Source: Macrostomum lignano
Lineage: Eukaryota
Direction: 5' to 3'
DNA length: 64,000 nt
Assembly: GCA_002269645.1 (NCBI GenBank)
Contig: NIVC01002422.1
Coordinates: 111,256 to 175,255 of the forward strand
The notes under the pieces are model-generated. The model was not told the origin of the DNA. It did not search any database and worked only from the letters and a program-made list of their open reading frames with translations. Shown here in pieces: positions 1-60,275 of this stretch. Position 1 is the stretch's first letter; each line of letters begins with the position of its first letter. A program made the translations under genes and the position numbers.

Positions 1-342
1 CGCACAACACCCTCGCAGGCCCAACCCCACGCACCACCCCTTTTCTCTTTCGACCATTTTAACAAGAACAAAGTCAAAACTCAAAATTGGCTAGGTTATA
101 TTTCTCAATAAGTGGCTCCAGCATCAGAGAGCGTCCACAGGGATAAAGTTTTGCTTTCGTCGTTTTGCTACACTTTTTTCTTTGTCAAGAACAAGCCACG
201 GGCAGTAGGGGTAGGGAGGCTTTCGCCAAATTCAGTGGCTTATTAATATTGGTAGCCTCTGGCTCAATCAAGTAGGCATGTTCTGATCAATCAGAAAATC
301 CGGTTCGGAATTGAAACCTCCAAGAAGCGAGTTCGCAGGGAG

Positions 343-11681
<11,339 letters not shown>

Positions 11682-12054
11682 GCTGCCGCAGAGCTGAGAC
11701 TAGTGAGTATAGACTGGGCTGCTCGAGCGGCAGCTCAGAGAGTCTTCGATGCTCAGTTGATTTTGAGAGATTTATCACCTGCTAATAACTGTTCGCGACT
11801 TCTGATTGGGCAATTGGGTGAACAGGCTTTTCAGGTCCATCCGCTATGCTAAAAGTGGTTTTAACTATCTATCCATCAATCCGTGTGTGATTGATAATTA
11901 CTTCTACTCAAAATGACTTGATAAGTGCTTCAATTCATGTCTTCGATTCGATGAAAGCCAGCCTAGATGTGAACAGACTGAACCTGGATTCGAATTTTAT
12001 TAGTGTAAGTTTTTTAGAAAGATTTTTTTAAAGTGAAAAAACTCAACATAATAA

Positions 12055-13002
12055 AAGAAGCGTCATGTCAACCATAAAAGATGCGTCATGTCAACCATAA
12101 AAGATGCGTCATGTCAAACATAAAAGAAGTGTCATTTCAACCATAAAAGATGCGTCATGTCAACCATAAAAGATGCGTCATGTCAAACATAAAAGAAGTT
12201 TCATGTCAAACATAAAAGAAGTGTCATGTCAAACATAAAATAAGTGTCATGTCAAACATAAAAGAAGTGTCATGTCAAACATAAAAGAAGTGTCATGTCA
12301 AACATAAAAGAAGTGTCATGTCAAACATAAAAGAAGTGTCATGTCAAACATAAAAGAAGTGTCTTGTCAAACATAAAAGAAGTGACATGTCAACCATAAA
12401 AGAAGCGTCATGTCAAACATAAAAGATGCTTCATGTCAAACATAAAAGAAGTGACATGTCAAACATAAAAGAAGTGTCATGTCAAACATAAAAGAAGTGT
12501 CATGTCAAACATAAAAGAAGTGTCATGTCAAACATAAAAGAAGTGTCATGTCAAACATAAAAGAAGTGACATGTCAAACATAAAAGAAGTGTCATGTCAA
12601 ACATAAAAGAAGCGTCATGTCAAACATAAAAGATGCGTCATGTCAAACATAAAAGAAGTGTCATGTCAAACATAAAAGATGCGTCATGTCAAACATAAAA
12701 AGTGTCATGTCAAACATAAAAGAAGTGTCATGTCAAACATAAAAAGTGTCATGTCAAACATAAAAGAAGTGTCATGTCAAACATAAAAGATGCGTCATGT
12801 CAAACATAAAAGAAGTGTCATGTCAAACATAAAAGAAGTGTCATGTCAAACATAAAAGAAGTGTCATGTCAAACATAAAAGATGCGTCATGTCAAACATA
12901 AAAAGTGTCATGTCAAACATAAAAGAAGTGTCATGTCAAACATAAAAAGTGTCATGTCAAACATAAAAGATGCGTCATGTCAAACATAAAAAGTGTCATG
13001 TC
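12055..13002. repeat. 23-bp minisatellite (GTCATGTCAAACATAAAAGAAGT), ~41 units, upstream of copy A
   Basis: Tandem periodicity; only ~2 units at the homologous site 27003-27040. Confidence 0.95.
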
Positions 13003-14440: not shown

Positions 14441-15821
14441 AGGCCCAACCCCACGCACCACCCCTTTTCTCTTTCGACCATTTTAACAAGAACAAAGTCA
14501 AAACTCAAAATTGGCTTGGTTATATTTCTCAATAAGTGGCTCCTGCATCAGAGAGCGTCCACAGGGATAAAGTTTTGCTTTCGTCGTTTTGCTATACTTT
14601 TTTCTTTGTCAAAAACAAGCCACGGGCAGTTAGGGGGTAGGGAGGCTTTCGCCAAATCCAGTGGCTTATTAATATTGGTAGCCTCTGGCTTATTAATATT
14701 GGTAGCCTCTGGCTTAATCAAGTAGGTATGTTCTGATCCGTCAGAAAATCCAGTTCGGAATTGAAACTTTCAAGAAGCGAGTTCGCAGGGAGTCACATTT
14801 CAAGAGACTCATTTCTAGCCGTGTTGACTCGCCCAGTCCCGTTGGGGTCATTGTTGCACACCGTCCTCAGCACCGTGTTGGCGTCGGCGACTCTGACGCG
14901 TCGGTCTTTGAGGATGGTCAGCACCTGGAATTCGATTTAGTCCGGATGTCCGATGGGGCTGCGAAGCGCCTGAGATTCACAATGTCTCGTAAGCTAAGCC
15001 TCCAGCCTAGACCTCATCAGAAAGTAATACAAATTTAGGTAAGTAGCGCTGGTAACTCGAAAACAAAATTGCTAACTTGCACTAATTACCAAAACTTGCA
15101 GTCCGCTCTACAGCCCACACCCCAGCAACCCCAGCCCACACTCCAGCCCACACTCCAGCCCACACTCCAGCCCACACACCAACCCACACTCCAGCCCACA
15201 CTCCAACCCACACTCCAGCCCACTCACCAACCCACACTCCAGCCCACACCCCAACCAACACTCCAGCCCACACCCGAACCCACACTCAAGCCCACATCCC
15301 AACCCACACTCAAGTCCATACCCCAGCCCACACCTCAGCCCACACTCAAGCCCACACCCCACACTCCAGCACACATCCCAACCCACACCCTAACCCACAC
15401 CCCACACCACACCCCACACCCCACACCCTGACCACCGACCTTCCCGCCAAACACCAGCAGCACGGTGGTGGCTGAGCAGATGTTGATGCAGCAGGTCAGC
15501 AGCACGAGTCGCAGGTCCACCGAGCCGATGGGCAGCGCAAACTCCAGCACCACGCCGATCAGCCCCATCACGGTGGTGTTGTACACGCAGATTCCGATCA
15601 CCTTCGAGTCGTTCAGCGCTTCCACGTGAATTGTGCGAGTCTCCCAGGCAAAGAAGATTCCGAACAGAAGGAACACCGCCTTCATGCCGATGATGAGGCC
15701 CTTCCACAGCACCTCGCTGCTGGACTGACACACGACCAGCTTGTGCAGAACCACAGCTCCGTCAGAGATCATGTCCTGCATTGGCATGGCACTGCATGTC
15801 AGTGGAATGTCAGTGGAATGT

Positions 15822-18800
15822 CAGAAATCACACTGCACACCCTGTTACCTGCTCAGACAGTCTCTTGTGAATGCAGAGTACAGAATCACTGCACACCCTG
15901 TTACCTGCTCAGACAGTCTCTTGTGAATGCAGAGTACAGAATCACTGCACACCCTGTTACCTGCTCAGACAGTCTCTTGTGAATGCAGAGTACAGAATCA
16001 CTGCACACCCTGTCACCTGCTCAGACAGTCTCTTGTGAATGTAGAGTACAGAATCACTGCACACCCTGTTACCTGCTCAGACAGTCTCTTGTGAATGCAG
16101 AGTACAGAATCACTGCACACCCTGTCACCTGCTCAGACAGTCTCTTGTGAATGCAGAGTACAGAATCACTGCACACCCTGTCACCTGCTCAGACAGTCTC
16201 TTGTGAATGCAGAGTACAGAATCACTGCACACCCTGTTACCTGCTCAGACAGTCTCTTGTGAATGCAGAGTACAGAATCACTGCACAAACTGTCACCTGC
16301 TCAGACAGTCTCTTGTGAATGCAGAGTACAGAATCACTGCACACCCTGTTACCTGCTCAGACAGTCTCTTGTGAATGCAGAGTACAGAATCACTGCACAC
16401 CCTGTTACCTGCTCAGACAGTCTCTTGTGAATGCAGAGTACAGAATCACTGCACACCCTGTCACCTGCTCAGACAGTCTCTTGTGAATGCAGAGTACAGA
16501 ATCACTGCACATCCTGTTACCTGCTCAGACAGTCTCTTGTGAATGCAGAGTACAGAATCACTGCACACCCTGTCACCTGCTCAGACAGTCTCTTGTGAAT
16601 GCAGAGTACAGAATCACTGCACACCCTGTTACCTGCTCAGACAGTCTCTTGTGAATGCAGAGTACAGAATCACTGCACACCCTGTTACCTGCTCAGACAG
16701 TCTCTTGTGAGTGCAGAGTACAGAATCACTGCACACCCTGTCACCTGCTCAGACAGTCTCTTGTGAATGCAGAGTACAGAATCACTGCACACCCTGTTAC
16801 CTGCTCAGACAGTCTCTTGTGAATGCAGAGTACAGAATCACTGCACACCCTGTTACCTGCTCAGACAGTCTCTTGTGAATGCAGAGTACAGAATCACTGC
16901 ACACCCTGTTACCTGCTCAGACAGTCTCTTGTGAATGCAGAGTACAGAATCACTGCACAAACTGTCACCTGCTCAGACAGTCTCTTGTGAATGCAGAGTA
17001 CAGAATCACTGCACACCCTGTTACCTGCTCAGACAGTCTCTTGTGAATGCAGAGTACAGAATCACTGCACACCCTGTCACCTGCTCAGACAGTCTCTTGT
17101 GAATGCAGAGTACAGAATCACTGCACACCCTGTTACCTGCTCAGACAGTCTCTTGTGAATGCAGAGTACAGAATCACTGCACACCCTGTCACCTGCTCAG
17201 ACAGTCTCTTGTGAGTGCAGAGTACAGAATCACTGCACACCCTGTTACCTGCTCAGACAGTCTCTTGTGAATGCAGAGTACAGAATCACTGCACAAACTG
17301 TCACCTGCTCAGACAGTCTCTTGTGAATGCAGAGTACAGAATCACTGCACACCCTGTTACCTGCTCAGACAGTCTCTTGTGAATGCAGAGTACAGAATCA
17401 CTGCACACCCTGTTACCTGCTCAGACAGTCTCTTGTGAATGCAGAGTACAGAATCACTGCACACCCTGTTACCTGCTCAGACAGTCTCTTGTGAGTGCAG
17501 AGTACAGAATCACTGCACACCCTGTTACCTGCTCAGACAGTCTCTTGTGAATGCAGAGTACAGAATCACAGCACACCCTGTTACCTGCTCAGACAGTCTC
17601 TTGTGAATGCAGAGTACAGAATCACTGCACACCCTGTTACCTGCTCAGACAGTCTCTTGTGAGTGCAGAGTACAGAATCACTGCACACCCTGTTACCTGC
17701 TCAGACAGTCTCTTGTGAATGCACAGTACAGAATCACTGCACACCCTGTTACCTGCTCAGACAGTCTCTTGTGAATGCAGAGTACAGAATCACAGCACAC
17801 CCTGTCACCTGCTCAGACAGTCTCTTGTGAATGCAGAGTACAGAGTCACTGCACACCCTGTTACCTGCTCAGACAGTCTCTTGTGAATGCAGAGTACAGA
17901 ATCACTGCACACCCTGTCACCTGCTCAGACAGTCTCTTGTGAATGCAGAGTACAGAATCACAGCACACCCTGTTACCTGCTCAGACAGTCTCTTGTGAAT
18001 GCACAGTACAGAATCACAGCACACCCTGTTACCTGCTCAGACAGTCTCTTGTGAATGCAGAGTACAGAATCACTGCACACCCTGTTACCTGCTCAGACAG
18101 TCTCTTGTGAATGCAGAGTACAGAATCACTGCACACCCTGTTACCTGCTCAGACAGTCTCTTGTGAGTGCAGAGTACAGAATCACTGCACACCCTGTTAC
18201 CTGCTCAGACAGTCTCTTGTGAATGCAGAGTACAGAATCACTGCACACCCTGTTACCTGCTCAGACAGTCTCTTGTGAATGTAGAGTACAGAATCACTGC
18301 ACACCCTGTTACCTGCTCAGACAGTCTCTTGTGAATGCACAGTACAGAATCACTGCACAACCTGTTACCTGCTCAGACAGTCCCTTGTGAGTGCAGAGTA
18401 CAGAATCACTGCACACCCTGTTACCTGCTCAGACAGTCTCTTGTGAATACAGAGTACAGAATCACTGCACACCCTGTTACCTGCTCAGACAGTCTCTTGT
18501 GAATGCAGAGTACAGAATCACTGCACACCCTGTTACCTGCTCAGACAGTCTCTTGTGAATGCACAGTACAGAATCACTGCACAACCTGTTACCTGCTCAG
18601 ACAGTCCCTTGTGAGTGCAGAGTACAGAATCACTGCACACCCTGTTACCTGCTCAGACAGTCTCTTGTGAATACAGAGTACAGAATCACTGCACACCCTG
18701 TTACCTGCTCAGACAGTCTCTTGTGAATGCAGAGTACAGAATCACACTGCACAACCTGTTACCTGCTCAGACAGTCTCTTGTGAATGCAGAGTACAGAAT

Positions 18801-18893
18801 CACTGCACAACCTGTTACCTGCTCAGACAGTCTCTTGTGAATGCAGAGTACAGAATCACAGTACACCCTGTTACCTGCTCAGACAGTCTCTTG
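15822..18893. repeat. 56-bp minisatellite, ~55 units (copy B)
   Basis: Same unit as 1262-1933. Confidence 0.95.
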
Positions 18894-20534
18894 ACAGCCA
18901 AGGCTGGTGAATCCAGGAGTCCAAGAGCCAGCAGCAGTCCAGCATCCATCAGCAGAATAGCGGCAATCACCATGCAGAGGTGCCAGTCCTTGATGGTCTA
19001 AAATCCGGTAATGCGTGACCAGGCTGGCTCAAGGTCATTCAGGGGACTGACTATACACGAGCACTGCAGTGCAGATGGACTCACAGTCAGCCTCATCTTG
19101 TTGGTGAAGATTCTGTGGACTCGCCACGTCTTTGCCAGAATTCCACCGAAGGCGCACGAGTAGCCAGTGATGAGGCAGAGCAGCTGGGACCAGCACAATC
19201 CGAGCTGGCTTCCCATGTACGCGTTGAAGGTCATGATGAGGCAGGACGCGTGGCACAGGAGGCAGCCCAGTCCGATGATGGTGTTCACGATGGGGCTGCT
19301 GAGCCGGATGTAGGGCACCTTGCGGAACCACAGGTTCACCGCCATGGCGGCCAGGGTGAGGCAGGCGCCGCAGGCAGACAGGCCGCCAGAGACCACGGCG
19401 CTGACGAGGCTGGCGTGGACGAGCTTTGAGAGGATTCTGGGAGAGTCGACTGGAGCTGAGCCGCCTGCGGGACGGGGTGAGAGATGCGCTGATGGGGCTC
19501 GGGAGACTGGGCTGATGGGGACTCGGGAGACTGGGCTGATGGGGGGCTCGGGAGACTGGGCTGTTGGGGACTCGGGAGACTGGGCTGATGGGGACTCGGG
19601 AGACTGGGCTGATGGGGACTCGGGAGACTGCACTGATGGGGACTCGGGAGACTGAGCTGATGGGGTCTCGGGAGACTGGGCTGATGGGTAACTCGGGAGA
19701 CTGGGCTGATGGGGACTCGGGAGACTGAGCTGATGGGGTCTCGGGAGACTGGGCTGATGGGGTCTCGGGAGTCTGAGCTGATGAGGGACTCTGGAGACTG
19801 GGCTGATAGGGGGAAATTCGAAAGGGTTAGGGTTAGGGATGGAGTGTTGATGGCCTAGCATTCGAATGGCGTACCCTCGAACCACAGTGGTTTGATCCAG
19901 CGACTGTCCCCTGTCTTCGGTTGATAAGTTGCAACCAAATCTCTCTTGAGACCTAGGGTAGGATGACACTCGTTGGCAATGTTCGTGCGTATAATTTAAA
20001 TTTTTAGAATAAGACTTAATCCCATGTCTTACCTCGGATTTGGTAAATAATAACGGTAGGTTCTCTGTCGCCCTTCGAATCAAAATTGACGGGACCCTGC
20101 AGTTGTTGCTTTATTCGTTGTTATGCATGTTTGTGATGCGGTAAAAATCTATAGTGATTTGCAAAGGTATAACAAAATACTCTTGTACACTATTGCAGTC
20201 TTGTACACTGTACCAGTCTTGTACACTGTACTAGTCTTGTACACTGTACTAGTCTTGTAAACTATAGAAGTCTTTTACATTATAGCCTTCTTGTATACAA
20301 CAGCAGTCTTGTACACTATAGCAGTCTTGTACACTTTATACACTTGAGAATTCTGGTACAACCTGATGAAATTGTACCCCTGTTTAAAATGCGATTCATC
20401 ATCATTCCAAGGAACGAATATTCTTGTTCTTTTCCTTAGGTATCCTTTAATTTCTACTCTTAGTAGTGGACTGGCGCAGAGAAGCATTTATCTTTATATT
20501 GTAGCGCCTTGTTTCCCACTGTCCTTGCGTAATA

Positions 20535-21281
20535 TAGCTTTTTGCAGCCCATTTGGGCTTATGCGCATTGAATTTAATCCAAGATAGGTTTGTCAAAGTA
20601 ATGGAGCTTTTGTCTATGGTAGCAAGGCTGGCACAGCGGCATTTAATTTGGCCCAACAAGCATCAATTTGGTCCATTTAGTTCATTTGCAGCTCAGTCCC
20701 AGAATTGTGGACCATATGCTAGGCTGTTGAACGAATGTCATTGGCTTGTGATCGAAGCACTCGACGGAGGTGAACACCCAAAGGACATTGCAAGGTTGTT
20801 GAATGTAAAAGAAAAGGTGGTTTACAGCATCCAGCAGCGCGTTGAAACTCTGCCGGCAGAGATTGCCTGCGAAAGGGTGGCAATCGCCAAAGAAAGTTGC
20901 TCGAGAGCCTCAGGTCCAACTGCTACTCGATGCAGTAGAAACGAACCCTTTGTTGACATTTCAGAAAATGCAGCAGAAGTTGAGGGAACAGCTCCAGTTG
21001 GTTATCAGATTTCGACCATCAGCAGAGCTCTGGAAAAGCAACTGAAAACTTTTGTTAGAGACGCTGACATTCCAGTGGTGCGCAATAACCTGCAGACGGT
21101 TGAGAGAAGGCAAGAGTTTGTCCAATGGCTCACGAGTGTTTGGACCAAATTGATGCTTTTTGGACCAAATTAAATGCTGCTGCGCCAGCCTTGCTACCAT
21201 AGACAAAAGCTCTGTTACATTGGCAAACGTATCTTGGATTAATTAAAATGCGCGTAGGCCCAAATGGGCTGCAAAATGCTA
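20535..21281 (+). mobile_element. Same Tc1/mariner derivative in GPCR copy B
   Basis: ~99% identical to 4056-4801, same insertion site; duplicated with the gene. Confidence 0.85.
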
Positions 21282-24200
21282 TATATAATAACTTTCTTTT
21301 GATTGCCCACAAGCTAGGTTGTCTATGACCCAAACTCCAACTTTCGGTTTCAGCCCCAAACCAACTGTACTTTATTTTTATTAAATAGACGCGATCGCCA
21401 CCCAGCCGAGGTTTAACCTTTCGCTCAACTTAATCAATCATCTTCATCTTTTGGTAGCCAGCGCTACAATATTTAACTTCTCGAATAGCGGCGTGCTTTC
21501 TGACATCTGAGCATGAGACGCAGGCGTATTTCAATTAACTTCGCATTAACGCCTCCGCTTCCCGCCCCTGCTAACTGACTACTGAAGGCAATTTCAAACA
21601 AATTTCGCCTGGGCCTGGTGGGCGGATGCGGGCTGCCCACCGATGGCCATCCACTTGTCGTCAAGCGGATTCACCAGATGTGGGGTGCTGTTTTCCGTTA
21701 AAATATGATAACACACAATTCTGGTTGATTATTGACTGCGAAGTTGTTTAAATCCTTTTTCGGATTTTCGGATCTCGCAATGAGATTTCAGTCTGCTAGC
21801 ATGGAACCGCGAGACAAGCAACTCACGGAAAGTCCATGAAAGTCCAGGCTGCGAACGTTCTCGAAGATTTTCTCTTTGAAACTCGAGCATTCGAGGTCGG
21901 CAGGCTCGGCAGTGTAATTCTCGCCCTGCTCCAGGGTGGCGTTGATGGCCAGGGCGGCCGCCGTCACCGCGTCGAAACGCGTGTCGAAGCCGTTGATGCC
22001 GTATTGCTGGGGGTTTGCGGTCCAGCTGCCGAACTGGCTGAGGAAGTCCTCGTAGGTCTCGTCTCTTGTCTGAAATTGTGCGGCCTGCCCTCTGAAGAAC
22101 TCGCTTGAGATGTCACGACAGTCAGAGATGTCCCGATATATCTTGACATCGTGACATCTCTGACATCGGGACATCTTGACATCGTGACATCTTGACATCG
22201 TGACATCTTGACATCGTGACATCTTGACATCGGGACATCTTGACATCGGGACGTCTTGACATCGTGACGTCTTGACATCGTTGACGTCTTGACATCGTTG
22301 ACGTCTTGACATCGGGACATCTCTGACATCGGGACATCTTGACATCGTGACGTCTTGACATCGTGACGTCTTGACATCGTGACATCTCTGACATCGGGAA
22401 ATCTTGACATCGGGACATCTTGACATCGGGACGTCTTGACATCGTTGACGTCTTGACATCGTTGACATCTCTGACATCGGGACATCTTGACATCGGGACA
22501 TCTTGACATCGGGACATCTTGACATCGGGACGTCTTGACATCGTGACGTCTTGACATCGTTGACGTCTTGACATCGTTGACGTCTTGACATCGGGACATC
22601 TCTGACATCGTGACATCTTGACATCGTGACATCTTGACATCGTGACGTCTTGACATCGTTGACGTCTTGACATCGTTGACGTCTTGACATCGGGACATTT
22701 TGGTATCTGCCATCGGGACATCTTGATTCCTAGCATATTTACATCCTAAGAACATCTTGACAAATGGCATTCTGGCTTAAAAACATCCTGACTTAAAGAC
22801 ATCCTGACATAATAGCATCATTACATATCAACATCCTGGCACATTAGCACCCTTACATCTTAAACATAATGTCATATTAGCATCTTGACTTTGTAGCATG
22901 ACATCCTGACATCCTGGCGTCCGATATTACAATACTGATATGAAATTACCGATATATTTGCAGCCTAGCGGACATACTGATATCCTGACATTTTGACAAC
23001 ATATCGGCACTATGCTTGACTCTCAAACATTCCTGGTTCTCAGCACCATGACGTCCTGACAGTATGACAACTTGAAGCTTTGAAATTTCGACATGTCGAA
23101 GTTCTGACATTCAGACATCGCAATTCTTACTCGACCCGTCAGTCCAGCGGGGTTCCTCCTCCCCGGATCCTCCTGGTCATTGTCCAGCACTATGGAACCC
23201 TCCATGGCCACGGCTCGCTCGGAATCAGAGCAGCTTCCATTATGATTGAGCTGCGTGGTTGCCGGAAGCCCCATCTGAATCCACTGGTACTTGGGTCCGT
23301 ACGCTCCCAGCCGCTTGATCTGTGTTTGTTAGCGCTTTTTGTTAGACTCCGTGTTAAACTGTTACTGATCTCAAGATTCGGAGGTGGGTGGATTCGGGTC
23401 TGGGAGATTGAGGTCTGAGAGATTCGAGTGTGGGAGATTCGGGGGTGGGAGATTCGGGTGTGGGAGATTCGGGTGTGGGAGATTCGGGTGTGAGAGATTC
23501 GGGTGTGGAAGATTCGGGTCTGGGAGATTCGGGTGTGGGAGATTCGGGTGTGGGAGATTCGGGTGTGGGTGGATTCGGGTGTGGGTGGATTAGGGAGTGG
23601 GTGGATACGGGTGTGGGAGATTCGGGTGTGGGTGGATTCGGGTGTGGGTGGATTAGGGAGTGGGTGGATTCGGTTGTGGGAGATTCGGGTGTGGGTGGAT
23701 TCGGGTGTGGGTGGATTCGAGTGTGGGTGGATTCGGGTGTGGGTGGATTAGGGTGTGGGTGGATTCGGGTGTGGGTGGATTCGGGTGTGGGTGGATTCGG
23801 GTGTGGGTGGATTCGGGTGTGGGTGGATTCGGGTGTGGGTGGATTCGGGTGTGGTTGGATTTGGGTGTGGGTGGATTCGGGTGTGGGTGGATTCAGGTGT
23901 GGTTGGATTTGGGTGTGGTTGGATTTGGGTGTGGGTGGATTCGTGTGTGGGTGGATTCGGGTGTGGTTGGATTTGGGTGTGGGTGGATTCGGTGCCCTAC
24001 CACGCAGTCCAGCCGCTTATCTGACTGTTCAGCGGCGATCGAGCGAACAGCGATGAAGATTCGAATGTCCTTTTGCTGCAAATCATAATAAGTAAACTCA
24101 CTGCGATAATTTTATAATTTAAACTGTTTATGTTAAAAACTATTGACGTGAGAATTAAACTTACCAGAAGGCTTGTCAGAGCGGCAGTGGCGTCAGTAAA

Positions 24201-24619
24201 GTACATCCGTTTGGAATAGCTGATGTTGCGGGCCATGAAATCTCTCTCCAGCTCGCTGGCCACCTGGAAGAAATCGTTTAACAAAAAAACGATTCTTTTA
24301 TCGCGCACTGACTGCATGAGTGACATTTAGTGACACACAGTGACACACAGTGACTCACAGTCACCCACAGTGACACCATCTGTTGCACAAGTGTGACACA
24401 GATGACGCACATATCTACTCACCGATTTGAATGCGGAGTAGTCTTGAACTAGAAAGCCGATCTTCTTCCAATTGAACTTGGTCACAATTGACACCAACGG
24501 TTTCACATAGACGTTAAAAGTAGTGGACATTCTCGTGTAGTACGGGTAGATCGACCGATCGCTTAGTTCCGGCGACAGATTCAGGCCAATCTGAAAATTA
24601 TGGAATTAAATCATAACAA

Positions 24620-25970
24620 AGTCACACAGTTTAGCCACAGTCTCTCACTTGAGTCACACAGTTTAGCCACAGGCTCTCACCTGAGTCACACAGTTTAGCC
24701 ACAGTCTCTCTCCTGAGTCACACAGTTTAGCCTCAGTCTCTCACCTCAGTGACACAGTTTAGCCACAGTCTCTCACCTGAGTCACACAGTTTAGTCACAG
24801 TCTCTCATCTGAGTCACACAGTTTAGTCACAGTCTCTCACCTGAGTCACACAGTTTAGTCACAGTCTTTCACCTGAGTCACACAGTTTAGCCACGGTCTC
24901 TCTCCTGAGTCACACAGTTTAGTCACAGTCTCTCACCTGAGTCACACAGTTTATTCACAGTCTCTCACCTGAGTCACACAGTTTAGTCACAGTCTCTCAC
25001 CTGAGTCACACAGTTTAGTCACAGTCTTTCACCTCAGTCACACAGTTTAGTCACAGTCTCTCACCTGAGTCACACAGTTTAGCCTCAGTCTCTCACCTGA
25101 GTCACACAGTTTAGCCACAGTCTCTCACCTCAGTCACACAGTTTAGTCACAGTCTCTCACCTGAATCACTAAGTAGCCTCAGTCTCTCACCTGAGTCACA
25201 CAGTTTAGCCTCAGTCTCTCACCTTAGTCACACAGTTTAGCCACAGTCTCTCACCTGAGTCACACAGTTTAGCCTCAGTCTCTCACCTGAGTCACACAGT
25301 TTAGCCACAGTCTCTCACCTGAGTCACACAGTTTAGTCACAGTCTCTCACCTGAGTCACACAGTTTAGCCTCAGTCTTTCACCTCAGTCACACAGTTTAG
25401 TCACAGTCTCTCACCTGAGTCACACAGTTTAGCCTCAGTCTCTCACCTGAGTCACACAGTTTAGCCACAGTCTCTCACCTCAGTCACACAGTTTAGTCAC
25501 AGTCTCTCACCTGAATCACTAAGTAGCCTCAGTCTCTCACCTGAGTCACACAGTTTAGCCACAGTCTCTCACCTGAGTCACACAGTTTAGCCTCAGTCTC
25601 TCACCTGAGTCACACAGTTTAGCCTCAGTCTCTCACCTGAGTCACACAGTTTAGCCTCAGTCTCTCACCTTAGTCACACAGTCTAGCCACAGTCTCTCAC
25701 CTGATTCACACAGTTTAGCCTCAGTCTCTCACCTGAGTCACACAGTTTAGCCTCAGTCTCTCACCTGAGTCACACAGTTTAGCCTCAGTCTCTCACCTGA
25801 GTCACACAGTTTAGCCTCAGTCTCTCACCTGAGTCACACAGTTTAGCCACAGTCTCTCACCTTAGTCACACAGTTTAGCCTCAGTCTCTCACCTGAGTCA
25901 CACAGTTTAGCCTCAGTCTCTCACCTGAGTCACACAGTTTAGCCACAGTCTCTCACCTGAGTCACACAGT
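24620..25970. repeat. 32-bp minisatellite, ~42 units (copy B)
   Basis: Same unit as 8140-10150. Confidence 0.95.
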
Positions 25971-27111
25971 AGTAGCGGGCCAGCTCAGCAATGACCTGAG
26001 ACTGCTGCGAGAAGCTGGCGCCCAGCATCAGCGTCTTGTTGCTGCCACTGAGGTAGCCGTCAACAAATGCCTTCAGAGCGGCGCCAACGTCTTCCTGCTG
26101 TTAATTGTGTATTTGAGTTGCGTTGCATTTACTTAATTGTGGCGACAAAATCTCCACTGATTGTAAAATTTCCATGGCGAAAAGCAATCAGTCTTAAAGG
26201 TTTAAATTAATCAAATTCACTCTTGAAGCGTTTGAAGCTCTCAGCATAGCAACTGAGAGTTGTTGACTTCTGCTGAGAACAATATCGCTGTTTCTTTATA
26301 TACGGGAGTTCGTGTCCACCTTTCGCTTTAGAATTCGAACAATGGACCAGCATGTAGAGGTTATAAATAAACTTTGTATTAAAATTTTCCTGACAGACAA
26401 CAATATTGCTACTGATTTGTTAAATTCCTGAGGGATTTAAGCAATTTCAATTTTTGATGCTCATCTGCATTCGATTTCTAGCACCTGATTTTTTTAGATA
26501 GGCTGAACTGAAAGACTGACTAACGCTAAAAAGTAAAAGAATCAAAATTTGAAGCTAAACCCATAAGTAATTGAACACTATAGACGAAGCGGTCAGACAG
26601 GCGACTGCCAGCAGAAATTTCAGGGGCAAGCGCATGCTGCCGCAGAGCTGAGACTAGTGAGTACTGGGCTGCTCGAGCGACAGCTCTCTTCAATGCTCAG
26701 TTGATTTTGAGAGATTTATCACCTGCTAATAACTGTTCGCGACTTCTGATTGGGCAATTGGGTGAACAGGCTTTTCAGGTCCATCCGCTATGCTAAAAGT
26801 GGTTTTAACTATCTATCCATCAATCCGTGTGTGAACTTCTACTCAAAATGACTTGATAAGTGCTTCAATTCATGTCTTCGATTCGATGAAAGCTAGCCTA
26901 GATGTGAACAGACTGAACCTGGATTTGAATTTTATTAGTGTAAGTTTTTTAGAAAGATTTTTTTAAAGTGAAGAAAGACTCAACGTAAAAAGAAAAGAAT
27001 CAAAGAAGCGTCATGTAAACCATAAAAAAGCGTCATGTCTGATACAATGCGGTAAATTTGGAATCCGCATTGAGACCTAAGAACCAAACCCTGCAAACAT
27101 ACCAGGACTGG

Positions 27112-28253: not shown

Positions 28254-30056
28254 AATGTCTATGACCGAAGCCAACGTCTGAGCTAACTACTTAATGCTAT
28301 ATTTAGCAGTTGTAACATTATAAAAACTTAATATAAAAAACAAATTTGTAACATTATAAAAACCTAATATGAACAAAACAATCAACGGATTTAGTATAAA
28401 TCGGTCCAAGCTGTACGCCGGATCAAGGCATGTTCGAAATATGCACGTGGAATTGGCAGTTGTTGAATGTGCCCGATATAGCTGTAGCCAACGTTTGCAT
28501 CTCCATTCCAGCCCTCGTGGCTGTAGATGTTGCTGTCGCGCATCGGCCTGAGCACTGGTCTCCGGTAGCAACGCATCAGCCGGTACCTCTGAGCCGGGCG
28601 TCGGCACACGCACCTCGTCGTGCGGGCTCTCTATCCTTTGCGCTCTTTTCCTCGCCGATGGAACTGATCCTTACAGACAGCCCAGCCATCTCTCCGTCAC
28701 GCTTTCTGCTGTTCCGAATGTACCTTTGTGCAGCTGTTTTAGTTTTGTGTCCCGTTACAGCGCTGTTATCCCTCAGGGACACTCCAGCTGCACTCAACTC
28801 GGTTGCCAGGGTGACTCTTAGACAGTGGCCAGTGTAAATCTTGCTCAAATTAGCCGCTTTGGAGATGCCACTCATCATGTTCCCAAGAGTGTTGAAGCCT
28901 ACAACCTGCTTAGCAAAATACCACGACTCTACAAAGCCGCGTACTCGGGGACGTATGAACACAACGGAGCTCGACACTCCCTCTTTTCTCTTGGCCTCTT
29001 CGATCTTGCTCAGGTAAAGCTCAACACACTCGTAGGGGCATCCTATTTCAAAGGTTTCGACAATCACACTCTGCTTCCTATCTTCTGAGGTCCGCGCTTC
29101 TAAACTTCCTCGCACAGTCTTGGTTTCCATTGATGCCAGCCTGAATGCGCGTCGCCCATTGATGTTGCATCTCTCAATAGAATCCGTAGTTAGCTTACGG
29201 AACCATTCGCGTCCACGCAAGCCAAACTGCAAGGCTAATACATAGTAGACCTCCTGCTGCAAAATGGTCGGGCTACTTCGATCGAAGTAGCGGCGCAGCT
29301 TTTCTAGATCCTCTGTCTCCAAGGCGCAGAACTGTCTGACGGTGCCGCCTGATCTGATGCACATGGCGGCTGGGGAGCCTTCAATTGCATGTTGGCCTTT
29401 GCACAGCGTGGATCCTCGATAATATTAACGTCACGGACACGCAGCAAATAGCGGAAAACACCAGCTCGAGCGGTAATCAACGAAGCAGGGGCATAGAAGC
29501 CACCGTCAATTTTACGAACAAAAGCATAGAAGATTCGCAAGCCAGTGACTAACTGTTCGATATCGGCTGTATTCAGATCGCAGGCGTAGTTCTTGCTTGA
29601 AAGCACCTCGTTGAACTTACGAAGTGCCCACTTTTCTTGCAACAGAGCTGACTTTGGCGTAGTGTCGAGTTGCATTACATCCATCTCCCTGAGAAAGTCT
29701 CGTTCCGGATCTTGACCAGCTAACAGCGCCTCGATTTCATTCACATCCAACTGAGCCAGATCGTCCAGCATGCCTTGCATAGTCGCCTCCCGCCGGATTC
29801 GCTCGCCAATCTCAGAAGACGACAAACGAACGACATATGCAGCAATCCAATAGGCTCGCCCGTTGATGCTTCGTAAATCATGATGACAGCTTTTTGGCCG
29901 CAAACTCGCTGACCTCGCTTGGCTTGGCTTAGCCCGTCTCTTCACTGCTCTAAACTGCCCAGATCTTTGGGCCATAGACATATTTGGAGCGTGCAACATT
30001 GAAGTATTGTTGCACGCTCAGACTACTTTATTGTCGCACGCTCCAAATGTCTATGG
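28254..30056 (-). mobile_element. Crypton-type tyrosine-recombinase transposon (CryptonA/DUF3504-like)
   Basis: YR ORFs bounded by AATGTCTATG direct repeats (28254-28263, 30046-30055) with a hairpin at the 5' end. Boundaries are inferred; the end could extend to ~30850. Confidence 0.7.
28576..29780 (-). CDS. Tyrosine recombinase (Crypton/ZMYM-DUF3504 type), one frameshift near 29372
   Basis: FYAFVRKIDGGFYAPASL, QFGLRGRE, CPYECVELYLSK, WYF..VGFNTLGNMMSGIS..NLSKIYTGHCLR, VTGHK..AQRY. Catalytic R, HxxR, H and Y are present. Confidence 0.88.
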
Positions 30057-30750: not shown

Positions 30751-30959
30751 CATCATTGTCGGATTATTCATCGTGCAGGAATGCACAAAACCGTGCAGGA
30801 ATGCATTTCTGCACCTAATGCTTTTTCAGTGAGATTTTACCATAGACATCCATTCCTGCTAGTCCTCGTTATGCTTGGTGTAGCTACAGTATATGCAGCT
30901 GGGTAACTGCCTATGGCACCGAAGGCCATTCTAGGATACAGGCTCTCCGAATGGATGAG

Positions 30960-33800
30960 AAGTGGGAAGCCCAAAGGGAAATAAAGTAAAAAAGATGGCC
31001 AGAGCTGAGACTACGGAGCAGACCCACGTTGGTTGCCGTTAAAACTCCGCCTTTTCTTTGTTGACAAAAGACTGGGCAATCCTTCAACTTTTTGACAGGT
31101 TCATCAAAAGCAATAAATATGCCGACAGTCTGCTTGTCTTCAAGCTTATCGAATGGAATTCCACGCAAGTGGCTCCACTGCCTGGCCAAACGGGTCCAAT
31201 CGACTGCTTTCAGATCACTTTTCACTCTTTCCGTTGTGTGCGCCGACACTCTCGCTCGATTGGACTCATCTAGACTCCGGATGCCGACCTCCACCGGTGC
31301 TGTTTGACAAGTGCTTAATTGGCCATTCAACCCTTTCACTTTCATCACCTGCTGTATCCGATCTCAAGTAGGTACGCGTACTCGCATCGTCAAGTATGGA
31401 GGTCACTGGCAGCTCCCGGTCGTCATCTGACAGAATCACTGGTACTGTTCTCAAGATCGGTGACGAACCCTGCGCCAACAACGTACAGGACTCCTGACCA
31501 CCGGCTTCTGGGGCTTCTCGCTCGCGCTTGGTCGCTCCCCCTGATTTTTAAACGCCATCGGAGTTTTGTGTGTCTCATGCAGCAAATGCCGGTTGTCTCG
31601 TCTTGCCACTTGTTCACTCCACAGCTTATCCCACGCTTGTAGTTGTCCATTCCACAGCCCATTCCACACTTGCAGCTGTCGACTCCACAGCTCATTCCAC
31701 GCTACCGCTTAAGTGATTTGTCCCCAGGTAGCTAAAGCACAGTCACTTCTGTTTTACAAATTCCCACCTGACTTGCAAATCCATTCTTAGAAACTTCAGC
31801 ACACTCCATGCTACTCATTACACAAACTGCAGCCTTTGCCTTCATTATTATTCTCTCTTCTATTGTCACTCATGTTGACAACGCCGCTAAAGTGCGTGCG
31901 CACCGGCTCTCCACGGTCTTGTCATGCTTTCGGTTGCAAAGGGAAAATTTATTCCGATTTTATGTTATGGATATTCGCCACTCTGCTCCATTTCATTCTC
32001 TTTCTGCTGTCTATTTTCTTGGGCATGAGCTACCACTCACAGTCTCTGTCAACTTTAGGAGAATTGCTCTCGATTATTCTGCGGCTCTCAGGGGAATTGC
32101 TCTCGATTAGTCTGTGGCGGCTCTCGAGGCGGCTCTCAATTGCTCTCGATTAGTCTGCGGCTTTCAGGGGGAATTAGCTTTGGCTTTCAGGGGGAATTGC
32201 TCTCGATTAGTCTGTGGCTTTCAGGGGGAATTGCTCTCGATTAGTCTGTGGCTTTCAGGGGGAATTGCTCTCGATTAGTCTGTGACTGCGGGATTTGTCT
32301 TCAATTAATATGGGAATCGTACTTAGATGATCTACGAATGGATTAGATACAGTGGAATCCAGAAAGTAAAAAAAGGTGGCCATGGCTGAGACTACGGAGC
32401 AGACCCACGTTGGTTGCCGTTAAAACTCCGCCTTTTCTTTGTTGACAAAAGACTGGGCAATCCTTCAACTTTTTGACAGGTTCATCAAAAGCAATAAATA
32501 TGCCGACAGTCTGCTTGTCTTCAAGCTTATCGAATGGAATTCCACGCAAGTGGCTCCACTGCCTGGCCAAACGGGTCCAATCGACTGCTTTCAGATCACT
32601 TTTCTACTCTTTCCGTTGTGCGCCGACACTGCTCGACTCGATTGGACTCATCTAACTCCGGATGCCGACCTCCACCGGTGCTGTTTGACAAGTGTTAATT
32701 GGCCATTCAACCCTTTCACTTTCATCACCTGCTGTATCCGATCTCAAGGTACGCGTACTCGCATCGTCAAGTATGGAGGTCACTGGCAGCTCGGTCGTCA
32801 TCTGACAGAATCACTGATTTCTCAAGATCGGTGACGAACCCTGAACAACGTACAGGACTCCTGACACCGGCTTCTGGGGCTTCTCGCTCGCGCTTGTCGC
32901 TCCCCTGATGAATTTCCACACACTAAGCTTGTACTCCACAGCTTACGCTAGCGAGCCCCAGGTAGCTAAAGCACAGTCACTTCTGTTTTACAAATTCCCA
33001 CCTGACTTGCAAATCCATTCAGAACTTCAGCACACTCCATGCTACTCAACACAAACTGCAGCCTTTGCCTTCAATTATAGTCACTCATGTTGACAACGCC
33101 GCTAAAGTGCGTGCGCACCGGCTCTCCACGGTCTTGTCATGCTTTCGGTTGCAAAGGGAAAATTTATTCCGATTTTATGTTATGGATATTCGCCACTCTG
33201 CTCCATTTCATTCTCTTTCTGCTGTCTATTTTCTTGGGCATGAGCTACCACTCACAGTCTCTGTCAACTTTAGGAGAATTGCTCTCGATTATTCTGCGGC
33301 TCTCAGGGGGAATTGCTCTCGATTAGTCTGTGGCTTTCAGGGGGAATTGCTCTCGATTAGTCTGCGGCTCTCAGGGGGAATTGCTCTCGATTAGTCTGCG
33401 GCTTTCAGGGGGATTTGCTCTAGATTAGTCTTTGGCTTTCAGGGGGAATTGCTCTCGATTAGTCTGTGGCTTTCAGGGGGAATTGCTCTCGATTAGTCTG
33501 TGGCTTTCAGGGGGAATTGCTCTCGATTAGTCTGTGACTGCGGGATTTGTCTTCAATTAATATGGGAATCGTACTTAGATGATCTACGTGGGATGGATTA
33601 ATTACAGTTAATCCAGAAAACTTGAACAAAAAGGTGGTGCTTGCATGTCGCTAAGTGTACACGACTTATCTGATCTAGACAGGTAACCTTGAGCAGGAAA
33701 ATTAAGACTGAATTTCTTCATCAAGAGCACACTGTGCCCCATTTCTTTATTAATATGTCTGCGTGATGGACAGGTCTTCGTCGCACTTTTGTCAAAATAA
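30960..33800 (-). mobile_element. BEL/Pao gag-protease remnant, tandemly duplicated (~30960-32340 and ~32345-33600)
   Basis: Pao protease LRTVPVIL..ILDDASTRTYL, VKGLNGQ..PVEV..AVDW..W.HLRGIPF; gag knuckle CSLCNE*HG..CFSYLG.NHLSG..CGVDSCK..HLLHE. Confidence 0.85.
32055..33540. repeat. 34-bp minisatellites (GGCTTTCAGGGGGAATTGCTCTCGATTAGTCTGT) at 32055-32285 and 33280-33540, amplified from BEL gag sequence
   Basis: Tandem periodicity of 34. Confidence 0.85.
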
Positions 33801-34228: not shown

Positions 34229-37200
34229 TCACTTGGACTGGTAGCACATGATCAGCTTGTTGAAGGCCACGAAGACCCCTTTGCGCGACTTGCTGCAATT
34301 TTTATGAGCGGAGGGGTGGAGAGGCGGATGTTGAGCTCTGTGTCACAGAAATATCGGAGCGCAGCCAGGGATACTAACCGGGATGCAGGGATACTAATCG
34401 GGATGCCAGGGATACTAACGGGATGCCAGGGATACTAATCGGGATGCCAGGGATACTAATCGGCCAGGGATACTCCGGGATTCCAGGGATACTAACCGGG
34501 ATGACAGGGATACTAACCGGGATGCCAGGGATACTAATCGGGATGCCAGGGATACTAACCGGGATGCCAGGGATACTAACCGGGATGCCAGGGATACTAA
34601 CCGGGATGCCAGGGATACTAACCGGGATGCCAGGGATACTAACCGGGATGCCAGGGATACTAACCGGGATGACAGGGATACTAACCGGGATACCAGGGAT
34701 ACTGACCGGGATACCAGGGATACTAACCGGGATGACAGGGATACTAACCGGGATACCAGGCTAACCGGGATACCAGGGATACTAACCGGGATACCAGGGA
34801 TACTAACCGGGATGCCAGGCTAACCGGGATGCCAGGGAGGCTAACTGGGATGCCAGGGAGGCTAACCGGGATGCCAGGGATACTAACCGGGATGCCAGGG
34901 ATACTAACCGGGATGCCAGGGAGGCTAACCGGGATGCCAGGAAGGCTAACCGGGATGCCAGGAAGGCTAACCGGGATGCCAGTAATGCTAACCGGGATGC
35001 CAGAGGCTAACAGGATGCCAGGTAGGCTAACCAGGGATGCCAGGGAGGCTAACCGGGATGCCAGGTAGGCTAACCGGATGCCAGGAAGGCTAACAGGGAT
35101 GTCAGGGAGGCTAACGGGATGCAGGGAGGCTATCCAGGATGGGATGCCAGGAAGGCAAACCGGGATTCCAGGAATGCTAACAGGGATGTTAGCATTACTG
35201 GAATCCTAGAATCATAGTTTGCTAACAGGGATGCCAGGGTCCTAACGCTTCTTTACCCTGGCTTGCACAGCAGATTAAATAAATTTATGGCACAAACTCG
35301 CCAAAGCAGCGAACGCAAAGCGCCTTTATCAGCCATTTTTTACTCAGGCGGCACAGACTCAATAACTAGTAACTTCACTAACTTGATATTAGTTCGTGCT
35401 GCAAATCCGAGACCCAGCAATCAAAATGGTGTCACACATCTGTGCATTTGGATAAGTACAAATAGCTATAGAATATGATGCAGTTATTGAGACAAGCTCT
35501 TAGAGATATTGTAGTTACCGTATTTGTAGTGTGCACCATCGTCTTGTGCACCATAGCTAAATCCTCATAGTAAATGCAGCTAAATTTGTAACGGTGCAAA
35601 CTAGCTATTGCTTTAATTTGACTACTCTGTGAGAATAAGCAAGTTTATGGCTATCTCTGACCAGTCAGTGGCCCACTTTGCCGGATAGTTTGAGGCCTCC
35701 TGGAAGAACAGATGGACACAGTACTTTGGCAAAATGCTAACATGCTGACTTTGGCAAAGTGCGAGCATGGAGTTAAATAAAACCGCTCCTCACCACTGAA
35801 AGTACCGCCTTCCGTCGTACACCCCATCGTGCTTGCCCTCCTCGTGGTCGAGCTCCACACCGAGGTACACGTCGTTCCTGCCCGGCAGGCGGCCAATATA
35901 GTGCACGAGGCCCTTGGAGATTCGGCCGCCCTGTCTGGTGAACTTCACCAGATCGCCGGTTCGAATGTCGTTGTGCCGTTTCGGCGCAAACGGATGCCGG
36001 CCTAAGGTGGAGAACGGGCTGACGACGCACCCTCCGGCTGCTGCGGCTGCTGGCGCCGGGTAGGCGGCGACGGGGGCGTCAGGGGAGGCGACAGCGGAGG
36101 CGACGGCGGCCGCCTTTCTAGAGCCTTGCCAGTCGACCGGTAGACGGCCAGACTGGAGCTGGAGCGGGCGTGCCTGGAGCCGCCGTGCAGCTGCGACGAC
36201 TGGCGCCTCGGCCTGTCGCGGCTTCCAACGGCCGCGGAAGAGGAAAAGTCCTGCGTGTACTTGCTGCGGTAGCCGGCTGAAAGATTTAGTAAAGGCGTTG
36301 CTATGGTTACCTTGAATACCTTCTCGATGATTTTGTTTTTCGTTAGCTAACTTTATCTCAATACTCTTTTTATGAAAGAAAACATTTTTCCAGTTCCATG
36401 AGAGTTTTTTCTAGGAAAATTCTACCTTTGTTGTCTAGAAACTCTTATCCAGGAATATTGCTACTAGAAATCTTCCCTGTACAGTATTTGGGACATTAGG
36501 ATTTTCTTCTGGCATGAAAACAGATTGATAAACAGTATCAAATTCTTCACCTTTGCCAGCGTCGAGGCCTTCAAACTCCCGTTCGACATCGGTGAGTATC
36601 GTGTCCGTCGATTCGCCCGAATCGTCAGCTGGCGCGGCCGCCGCAGTCCCGTTGCCGCCGACCGGATCCGCGGCGCCTGAAAGCGACAACGGCGGAACAA
36701 TCGGGTGTCGCTTCTTCAACGTCTGCGCGGAGTCCTGCTTGGCTGGCGACCGGGAGCGCGAGTGCCGGTCCAGGGTGGCCGAGGCTGTCAGTTCGAACGG
36801 CTGCTCGTAGCGCTGATAGCTGCGCGCCTCGAACTGGGGCCGCGGCTGTTGCTGCTGCTGGCGGCTCGCTGATATGGCTAGCGGATTGGAGGAGAAATAG
36901 AACAGGCCAATGAGAATTGAGAAATGCAGTCTTCCACAGCTAGAGCAGCCAAAAAGAGACAGACAAAAGAGACGCGGAGGAAGGGGGTGGGACGTCTCCC
37001 ATTATTATATTAGCCAACTAGAGACACGAATGGAGGTGAGCGTCTTCCTTGACCAGAACAGCCTATAAGAGACGCGGAGGGAGGTGGGCGTCTTCCTTGA
37101 CCAGAACAGCCAATAAGAGACGCAGAGGGAGGTGGGCGTCTTCCTTGACCGGAGCAACCAATAAGAGAAGCTGAGGGAGGTGGGCGCCTTGACCGCAATA

Positions 37201-40200: not shown

Positions 40201-41986
40201 AGGATTTTCTACTCACTGATGCGCCGCTTCAGTGCAGCCGGACTGTCGGGGTCGAACTCTGGTAGGCCAGGGTGCTGCTGCTGCGGCTGGGCCGACGGCT
40301 GCTGCTTTTGCAATTGAAGCGACTCAACCTGCAATCGAAGCTGCTGCATCTCAGTTGCCATGGTTTCCTTTTCAAACAGCAGCCGATCCAGGAGTCGCTG
40401 CGACTCGTCCGAGTCCAGCCGGGGCCGGTCGGCCGACGCGCCGTCCGCCGTAGTGCCGTTCGAGTCGCCGCCGGCAGTGGCAGCTGCGGTGGCCCGGCTT
40501 AGCGAGGCCTGCAGGCGCCGATTCTCTTCTAGAAGGTCGTCAACTCGACGCTGGAGTCGCTGCTGGTCAGGCAGCAACTGCTGATGCTGCAGTTCTGGCT
40601 GGTTACGCTGAGCAGTGGCTGAGTGAGCAGCTGCATCCTCTTCAAGTGCTCGCTGAAAATCAAAGTTTGATTGGCGATAAGCGGCACGTGCGGGAGGGCC
40701 CGAGTCGGCCAGAGTCATTGCTGGCTAACAGTTTGAGGGATCTCTGCTGGCTCAGTTGTCCGCTTTCCAGGCTGAACGCGCTTATTTAGCGATCTAGCAG
40801 AAACTTCTCTAGTAGCAATAGCGGATAATGCGACTGCGCAGATTCCATTGGAGTTTCTTTTGACATTTTTAACTTCCTGTTTTTTTAAAGCCTTATAAAC
40901 GTTTGAAGCTGATTGAGAGTTTTGATGCAACTACACTGAGTAGTGCGCAAGTCTGAGAGAACAGCAATAGGCCAAGAACTACTCGGGGGTTACATTCGCA
41001 TTTTTAGATTTACGCTCGTAATATAGAACTTTTTAAACTTCAGTTTGAGTCTTTCGAATCTAGTGGATCTTAAAATTTTTTTGGAAGTGATCTTTTGAAT
41101 TTAATTATTCACACGTTGATCTTATACAACGTAGACAATTGAATGGGGCACTAAAGGGGCCAAATGTTAAGTACAGGCAGCACTAGAAGTCACAAATGAT
41201 TATTTTTATGGTCACCCATAATAGCTAGGGTAGCCTTCAAAGGTAACATCTATGAGCGTAACATCTATAATAATATAATTGATTACACCTGGCCCCAATT
41301 GGGCCAGATGTGCAACCGACAGCTCAGCCGCAGCTATTGCGCGGCGCATCTGAAGGCTGTTCAGTCCATGGACTGGGGGTCGTCCCACACACCCTCAATT
41401 ATACCCAAGCTAATGCTGGCACCAATTTTAAAGCTGGGTAAACTGAAGCAATTGCTCAAGGACACAAGTTGTTACATTGGGATCGGGAATCGAATCCCCG
41501 ACCTTTAAGTAGTGAGTCCGACGCTCTAAGCACTCCCTGCAATCGCTAGGATACTGTATATCAATTCATGACTTTACATGCCGGAGCATATAAACTTACA
41601 GAAACTGTTCTGACATCAACGCGACTTCCTCCTTTGCTGCTGCTGCCACCGTTTTCGCTACCACCCAGAGCTTGTTTTGGCGGATGCGGCGGCGGAGATG
41701 GAGACACCGAGGCGCTGCCACCTCGCTGATGGCGTCGATCGCGCTCGATTTCAGCGTCCAAATCGAGGAGCAGCTGCTCGGCTCGTGACATACGCGATCT
41801 GGGCCTGTCGTCCGGCTTGACTGGCGACGCCGGCCGTCTCTCAGGAGACGACAGCGACGAAGACTGCTTAATTGGTGACGCAGGACGTCCCTCGGAGGCG
41901 GCTTCGGGAGGGTGATAGCCATTTGAATTGGAGGAGGCTGTGGCGGCGGCCGCCACGGTAGCTTCTTCTTGCGCTGCGGAACTCAT
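34229..41986 (-). CDS. Coiled-coil protein with C-terminal CAP-Gly domain
   Basis: Phase-consistent exons 41600-41986, 40217-40652, 39153-39361, 38352-38568, 37667-37750, 36551-36877, 36031-36276, 35794-36001, 34229-34292. CAP-Gly reads GDLVKF..KGLVHYIGRLPGRNDVYLGVELDHEEGKHDGVYDGRRYFQC-KSRKGVFVAFNKL. Heptad segments e.g. LQRRVDDLLEENRRLQ. Confidence 0.8.
34366..35240. repeat. 21-bp minisatellite (GGGATACTAACCGGGATGCCA) degrading rightwards
   Basis: Tandem periodicity in the last intron of the CAP-Gly gene. Confidence 0.9.
36968..37225. repeat. 48-bp minisatellite, ~5 units
   Basis: AAGAGACGCGGAGGGAGGTGGGCGTCTTCCTTGACCAGAACAGCCAAT repeated. Confidence 0.8.
37868..38110. repeat. 30-bp G-rich minisatellite
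   Basis: GGGGTAGAGGGGGAACCCCAAGGATAGACG repeated. Confidence 0.85.
41288..41532 (-). mobile_element. tRNA-derived SINE (degenerate copy)
   Basis: Homologous to 62118-62398; B-box-like GATTCGATTCC on minus strand. Confidence 0.7.
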
Positions 41987-44875: not shown

Positions 44876-45283
44876 TAATATTTATTTACTCATAAATCCT
44901 TTTTGTTTTATAATATTTATTTAAAGCTAATATTTGTTATTGTGATTTTATAGTATAATATAGGTCTTGATACCATAATTACATTTAATACTAATTGTTT
45001 GTTTTATATACATAATATATGAATATGAAATGTTAAAGTATTAGATATTTTTACAACTATAATAAACTAGGGAATAAGCATTTAGTATACTATAATATGA
45101 TTAACATGATTGTAAAAATTACCTTTGTATTTAACTATGATATTATTGATTTTCTAATTTCCAGACTATTTATAATAAGTTGTAAAGAATAAACTCTATC
45201 AATTCTAACTAGTTTAGTCATCAAGACATCATTGTTGGCATGTCAACTTCAGTTATTAATTACTGAAGCTACCAACTATCAAG

Positions 45284-60275
<14,992 letters not shown>

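Follow-up and report, generated by a model that had tools for sequence, protein, structure and literature searches.

Minisatellites that lie across an exon–intron junction and repeat the splice donor with their units are known from several human genes. In F7, the first element of a 37-bp variable number tandem repeat (VNTR) spans the boundary of exon 7 and intron 7, giving 5-9 identical donors, of which the most upstream alone is used; the others are functional if the upstream ones are inactivated (PMC1557585). The copy number of this array shows a marginal clinical association (PMC3166910). The present analysis concerns an array of the same anatomy in the flatworm Macrostomum lignano, located in a stretch of 64,000 nucleotides (contig NIVC01002422.1, positions 111,256 to 175,255; hereafter the window). 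Here, a 56-bp minisatellite repeats the donor of the exon for transmembrane segment 4 (TM4) of a predicted class C receptor, in both of two tandem gene copies. It is a junction-spanning minisatellite of a known kind, although unusually large, and is probably neutral, a side effect of minisatellites growing in short introns.

Further human precedents differ in how many of the repeated donors are used. At the exon 2 donor of IFI6 (6-16), the authentic site is followed by 25 pseudo-sites, of which the two nearest are also used (PMC1557585, citing Turri et al. 1995), making this the nearest precedent by donor copy number. CBS intron 13 carries 15-20 repeats and two of its pseudo-sites are also used, LMNB2 carries 10-15 units of 100 bp and uses the authentic donor alone, and the situation is similar in PDGFA intron 4, with 16-18 units of 81 bp (PMC1557585). 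In young human paralogs within segmental duplications, repeat number differs between the copies, some of the repeats lie at exon–intron boundaries and splicing is altered (De Grassi and Ciccarelli 2009, PMC2812944). These latter cases are from primates, involve mostly coding repeats and have far fewer units than the array described here.

The gene occurs as two tandem copies on the same strand, A and B (Table 1), that are 92.5-100% identical segment by segment, with about 2.6 kb of unique spacer between them. Its product matches the Pfam families 7tm_3 (8.8e-41) and ANF_receptor (9e-16), and is on this basis assigned to the class C, GABA-B-like G protein-coupled receptors, with an extracellular ligand-binding ANF_receptor domain followed by 7tm_3. 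In each copy, the same 11 exons join into one 1909-nt frame without a stop, yielding a 637-amino acid model. This single open frame validates the splice junctions, including that between the TM4 exon and exon 12, where homology also backs the exon boundary. The nearest database proteins are M. lignano UniRef entries that are practically identical within the exons, followed by two M. lignano paralogs (P0003 and P0004) at about 50% identity. When the transmembrane half, the ligand-binding half and the RTEL1 homologue nearby were used as queries in homology searches, no NCBI M. lignano protein for the locus was retrieved, only the UniRef models and the 50%-identical paralogs. The coding sequences of A and B differ at 8 sites in 1909 nt, 6 synonymous and 2 non-synonymous. 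Under neutrality, 6 or more synonymous differences out of 8 would arise with a probability of 0.004, which points to purifying selection on at least one copy since the duplication. Two of the differences fall in the TM4 exon (codon 491, V/A, GTC in A and GCC in B, and codon 504, synonymous, CTC/CTT) and are usable as paralog-specific markers.

The TM4 exon of copy B ends in ...GCT GTC AAG AGA CTG TCT GAG CAG/GTAACA (a slash marks splice boundaries throughout), with the boundary at 18875/18874 and the GT of the authentic donor at 18874-18873. The first 56-bp unit consists of the last 19 nt of this exon (18893-18875) and the first 37 nt of the intron, and all other units are intronic copies of it, arranged head to tail. 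On the minus strand the unit reads CAAGAGACTGTCTGAGCAG/GT(A/G)ACAGGGTGTGCAGTGATTCTGTACTCTGCATTCA. Within the one assembled sequence, the motif CAGGT[AG]ACAG is present 55 times in B, where neighbouring motifs lie 56 nt apart in 53 cases and 58 nt apart in one, while the paralog A has 12. The donor CAG/GT(A/G)ACAG is intact in every unit (55/55 in B, 12/12 in A). The intron that separates the TM4 exon from the exon for TM5-7 is 3099 nt long in copy B, and 3044 nt of it are array. The acceptor AG lies at 15777-15776, 73 nt downstream of the last pseudo-donor, after which exon 12 opens with GAC. The unit map of B (JKLGCHAGCHIACAAMDBNOPCADCAAAECBABAEAAAQAABRBAAEABBIBAA), in which a block of 4 units is duplicated close to the exon and GTG variants occur distally only, reflects ordinary minisatellite dynamics.

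Simulated splicing shows what use of each donor would entail. Donor 1 gives the normal frame (...KRLSEQ/DMISDG). Donor 2 adds 56 nt, shifting the frame and placing a stop two codons into exon 12, while donor 3 and every later donor bring in an in-frame TAA, from the AGG TAA at the unit-2 donor, so that the predicted product ends after TM4. The intact and constrained frames argue for productive splicing from donor 1, without quantifying its share. A preliminary description of the locus had given the array about 55 copies in B and about 12 in A, the same TM4 exon end with a donor in the unit, and the same frameshift and truncation, and these points are borne out by the Tandem Repeats Finder (TRF) and motif counts, by the 11-exon frame and by the simulated splicing. 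From its coordinates for the array, 15822-18893, the end is retained, whereas the start has to be moved, as the array proper begins at 15831 and exon 12 at 15775.

A second donor-spanning array, with a 32-bp unit, occupies another intron of the same gene. Its unit is ACTGTGTGACTCAG/GTGAGAGACTGTGGCTAA, which takes its first 14 nt from the end of the exon at 26097-25957 and has the donor CAG/GTGAGA; in copy B, 29 unique nt remain before the acceptor. An 11-nt direct repeat, ACTGTGTGACT, stands at the exon end and again 32 nt downstream, and is the likely substrate on which this array was founded. The 32- and 56-bp units have in common just the 9-mer AGAGACTGT and CAGGT, and the 9-mer belongs to the exon part of one unit and to the intron part of the other. 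The two arrays are therefore of independent origin, each derived from its own exon end. Since each is present in both gene copies, two founding events rather than four preceded the gene duplication, and the copy-number changes came afterwards. This largely upholds the earlier claim of unrelated units and two independent junction amplifications in one gene, with the shared 9-mer and CAGGT as a small exception, and TRF also reproduces the 63 copies (A) and 42 copies (B) reported for the 32-bp array.

The two arrays also allow constraint on the repeated donors to be assessed. In the 32-bp arrays, no selection on the pseudo-donors is seen, the GT being lost in 3/42 units of B and 5/63 of A, and the donor 9-mer is not more conserved than the rest of the unit in either array (P=0.77 and 0.54). 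RNA folds, of the exon end with four units and of one to three units by themselves, were not more stable than shuffles (z -0.4 to +2.2). A masking of the pseudo-donors by RNA structure was rejected, as a small donor hairpin forms within every unit, and so also at the authentic site.

The intron that holds the 56-bp array is older than the array. At the homologous TM4/TM5 position, the introns of P0003 and P0004 measure about 190 and 112 nt, respectively, and neither holds an array, which implies an old intron and a young array. Introns have reportedly been created from tandem duplications or arrays, by the Rogers-type duplication of AGGT and in the cases of Zhuo et al. 2007. Such events resemble the present one in that a duplication yields extra splice sites, but differ in that the intron here pre-dates the array and no new intron arises. 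Intron gain by tandem duplication (the Rogers model) is ruled out by the array-free introns at the homologous position in P0003 and P0004.

Intron length in this gene is set almost wholly by arrays. The array-free introns measure 80-89 nt and the unique sequence in most array-bearing introns 29-111 nt, whereas minisatellites account for 71% of the intron sequence of copy B (6204/8762 bases, 14600-26100). The one long "unique" intron contains a 755-bp inverted-repeat element. The ancestral introns of the gene would thus have been some 55-110 nt long. By subtraction, the intron between the TM4 exon and exon 12 appears to have measured about 73 nt, and that of the 32-bp array about 58 nt.

In introns of this size, a tandem duplication readily reaches the donor. 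If an intron is I0 nt long and the duplicated segment L nt, the duplication has I0-L+1 placements inside the intron and L-1 across each junction. For the 13 arrays in introns of the receptor gene and of the nearby RTEL1 homologue, this geometric model expects 1.76 donor-spanning arrays, or 2.41 if acceptor-spanning arrays are not tolerated, against 2 observed (P(>=2)=0.56-0.78). The two donor-spanning arrays are also the two with the highest prior (0.35 and 0.43) and the largest unit-to-intron ratio. For units of 32 and 56 bp that arose in ancestral introns of about 58 and 73 nt, the share of tolerated founding duplications that must span the donor is 35-75%. Because the geometry predicts the observed number, no donor-specific amplification process is needed.

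A simple course of events would account for these observations. In an intron of about 73 nt, a local tandem duplication, probably through slippage or unequal exchange, would have arisen across the donor and been tolerated because it left the exon and the first donor intact. The array would then have grown and shrunk independently in the two gene copies, to 12 and 55 units in the one sequence available for each, and the 32-bp array would have followed the same route from its intron of about 58 nt. Recurrence within the gene would follow from geometry, given that minisatellites seed in very short introns, and not from a process that multiplies donors. Productive mRNA would use donor 1, as the human precedents and the conservation of the reading frame suggest, and the other donors would mostly be silent by-products which, if used, would lead to premature stops and truncation after TM4.

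The resemblance to F7 intron 7 ("HVR4") is close, as in both cases the first monomer combines exon end and intron start and the authentic donor is followed by identical pseudo-donors. Copy number is variable in F7, and here it differs between the two paralogous copies (12 versus 55 units). The two differ in copy number (5-9 in F7 versus 12-55 here) and in the exonic part of the unit, 4 exon nt with 33 intron nt in F7 versus 19 exon nt here. Moreover, exclusive use of the first donor was shown experimentally for the mammalian gene and is a prediction for the flatworm array. The unit of IFI6 is 12 bp long, so that its next two donors are in frame and give protein isoforms, while with the 56-bp unit every alternative donor gives a premature stop. 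CBS, LMNB2 and PDGFA share the first monomer at the exon–intron border and have arrays of 10-20 units, but only one array per gene, compared to two donor-spanning arrays here and arrays flush with two further donors. The possibly undescribed mechanism that had been proposed for the locus is therefore not supported: the same anatomy exists in human F7, IFI6, CBS, LMNB2 and PDGFA, and geometry would suffice to account for the recurrence. What is new is the flatworm host, the size (55 and 42-63 units) and the presence of two such arrays in one gene.

Several points weigh against a neutral by-product that is spliced from the first donor. The geometric model rests on 13 arrays and on reconstructed ancestral intron lengths, and no acceptor-spanning array was found among the 13, where 1.8 were expected (P about 0.13). 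In flatworm genes with short introns, splice-site pairing may take place across the intron, which could favour the last donor, located 73 nt upstream of the acceptor. The first-donor rule of F7 was established in mammalian cells, and the UniRef models that contain the junction KRLSEQ/DMISDG are error-ridden predictions and not transcripts. Furthermore, all 55+12 donors of the 56-bp arrays are intact, and differences between units number 2/1007 in the exon-derived 19 nt versus 45/1961 in the intron-derived 37 nt. Counted by variable sites, this becomes 2/26 versus 9/30, with P roughly 0.04 as an estimate without a test. The lower variability of the exon-derived part might point to constraint, but the units arose by copying one another, so that the counts are not independent, and the contrast, weak by variable sites, is a hint rather than evidence.

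The size of the array in B could alternatively reflect relaxed constraint, if B were a decaying, 5'-truncated duplicate in which 55 units are tolerated because its correct splicing is no longer needed. The loss from B of most of exon 1, with a stop after 16 signal-peptide codons, agrees with this. However, the other 11 exons of B are open and nearly identical to those of A (8 differences in 1909 nt, mostly synonymous), and a weak donor, TGG/GTTTAG, could still join its short exon 1 in frame. Large arrays are moreover not confined to B, given that the 32-bp and 24-bp arrays are larger in A. Relaxed constraint is thus an unlikely explanation, though one to be reckoned with.

Rather less credence can be given to the array as an expression rheostat, in which several donors are used, the non-first ones yield premature-stop mRNA that is degraded or encodes a TM4-truncated receptor, and array length sets the productive share and differentiates the paralogs. 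Tandem-repeat length is reported to be associated with splicing variation at thousands of human loci (PMC10078293), which lends the idea some precedent. At this locus, all donors are intact, with identical 9-mers in the first 17 units of B, every non-first donor leads to a premature stop, the last one would define a normal-sized 73-nt intron, and less variation is seen in the exon-derived and donor part of the 56-bp unit. Against this, the pseudo-sites of F7 are functional yet silent, and the number of F7 repeats shows no more than a marginal clinical association (PMC3166910). The pseudo-donors of the 32-bp arrays are decaying, and RNA folding gives no unit-specific structure. The copy numbers of the two arrays also run in opposite directions between A and B, as drift would have them.

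An assembly artefact, in which the length of the B array or the tandem order of A and B results from mis-assembly of repeats, haplotypes or homeologues, is very unlikely. Assembly of the M. lignano genome is difficult, as simple and tandem repeats make up 15% of it and duplicated blocks with >=95% identity add up to 180 Mb (PMC5730564), and A and B are themselves 92.5-100% identical by segment. Yet this identity varies along the copies, and about 2.6 kb of unique sequence separate them. The B array has an ordered variant structure, in which a 4-unit block is duplicated near the exon and the GTG variants occupy the distal two thirds. The UniRef models P0001 and P0005, from another assembly and marred by frameshifts, lead from the final exons of one copy to the initial exons of the following one, which reproduces the B-to-A order and argues against a mis-joined haplotype. 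Finally, a mobile or dispersed satellite that brought the exon end and donor from elsewhere can be dismissed almost outright, since, even though the window holds transposons (a Crypton-like recombinase and the 755-bp inverted-repeat element), no other copy of the unit exists in 64 kb + 22.7 kb (the window and L001) beyond chance matches of 12-13 nt, and what the exon contributes to the unit is ordinary coding sequence, at an intron position common to array-free paralogs.

Table 1. Coordinates of the two receptor gene copies, their exons around the TM4 junction and the donor-spanning arrays, as positions in the window.
Feature	Position	Strand	Basis or remark
Gene copy A	about 236-12115	(-)	tandem duplicate
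Gene copy B	about 14686-27039	(-)	tandem duplicate, same strand as copy A
TM4 exon ("exon 11"), copy B	18875-18997	(-)	sequence, 11-exon open frame, 7tm_3 match
TM4 exon, copy A	1915-2037	(-)	comparison with copy B
Exon 12 (TM5-TM7), copy B	15427-15775	(-)	gene model; junction supported by P0005
Exon 12 (TM5-TM7), copy A	867-1215	(-)	comparison with copy B
56-bp minisatellite, copy B	15831-18893	(-)	TRF: 54.7 copies, 96% matches, score 5772
56-bp minisatellite, copy A	1266-1933	(-)	TRF: 11.7 copies; mixed 56- and 58-bp units
Unique 3' intron remainder, copy B	15776-15830 (55 nt)	(-)	includes small 11-bp repeat and acceptor ...CCAATGCAG/
32-bp donor-spanning array, copy B	24620-25970	(-)	TRF: 42.3 copies; upstream exon 26097-25957
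32-bp donor-spanning array, copy A	8140-10150	(-)	TRF: 63.3 copies; upstream exon 10277-10137

At the 5' end of the gene, exon 1 of copy A runs from an ATG at 11681 to the donor GGG/GTACTT at 11447/11446 (78 codons). In this region (26440-26720 in B, 10640-11700 in A), copy B lacks about 1 kb of A (10640-11626), which removes most of exon 1 together with the (GTTA)188 microsatellite in intron 1, and retains 16 signal-peptide codons followed by TAG. Copy B may therefore be a 5'-defective duplicate.

Minisatellites are very abundant in the window, where TRF returns 92 rows; evidence for a "core" motif shared among its 27 array families is marginal (P=0.02, 0.09 and 0.14 for k=6, 7 and 8). Within the receptor gene, a GT-rich array at 15111-15428 (GTGTGGG, 12-bp and 24-bp units) is flush with the exon 12 donor CAGG/GTGTGG, and each of its units is donor-like. 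It would be the third donor-associated array of the gene, which depends on the gene model, whose junction is supported by P0005. A 16-bp array at 23375-23992 (A: 6895-7512) begins at intron position +7, just after the donor GTG/GTAGGG. A 24-bp array at 19481-19812 (A: 2519-3332), with a unit of 8 codons that contains the acceptor-like CCCCATCAG, stops 16 nt before the acceptor of the TM1 exon and has 34 copies in A and 14 in B. The UniRef models P0001, P0002, P0005 and P0008 contain frameshifts, fused tandem copies and translated repeat units, and P0008 begins inside the 16-bp array. The 755-bp element has terminal inverted repeats of about 145 bp and lies in a 1.7-kb intron of both gene copies (B: about 20530-21290), with a third copy, 94.6% identical, at 44133-44877; its open reading frame (ORF) of 251 amino acids has no Pfam match.

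Just upstream of copy B, an ORF for a Crypton-like tyrosine recombinase is located at 28579-30017 (-), with matches to Phage_integrase (3.8e-8) and DUF3504 (4.5e-7). A segment of about 0.8-1.4 kb is duplicated about 1.4 kb apart (30914-31700 and 32346-33100), showing the same ORFs twice with 34-bp arrays beside each, and is probably a repeat or transposon fragment. The RTEL1 homologue at 46640-55190 (+) contains the DEAD_2 and Helicase_C_2 domains, and its introns hold arrays of 16-38 bp, none of them junction-spanning. Its best database matches are 51-53% identical and none is from M. lignano, and it seems absent from the public M. lignano protein sets. Other genes nearby are one for a CAP-Gly domain protein with coiled-coil-like exons at 35793-42007 (-) and a phosphoglucomutase/PGM3-like gene (PGM_PMM_I) at 61382-62870 (+), both flanked by further arrays.

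The locus amounts to a natural competition assay for 5' splice-site choice, in which 55 near-identical donors (42-63 in the other array) face one acceptor. Since an animal with short introns may favour pairing across the intron, it could test the generality of the mammalian most-upstream-donor rule. For annotation, array-filled introns are a hazard, as the public models of this locus include repeat units translated into protein. A bolder proposal, for which the odds are long, is that minisatellites are the main determinant of intron length in M. lignano and that arrays of tens of donors are common in it. Length-dependent donor choice would then act as a fast-mutating, heritable dial on productive mRNA by which young paralogs diverge in expression, and the 67/67 intact donors would reflect selection and not youth. 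At this gene, the arrays show how M. lignano introns grow, with about 70% of its intron sequence being minisatellite.

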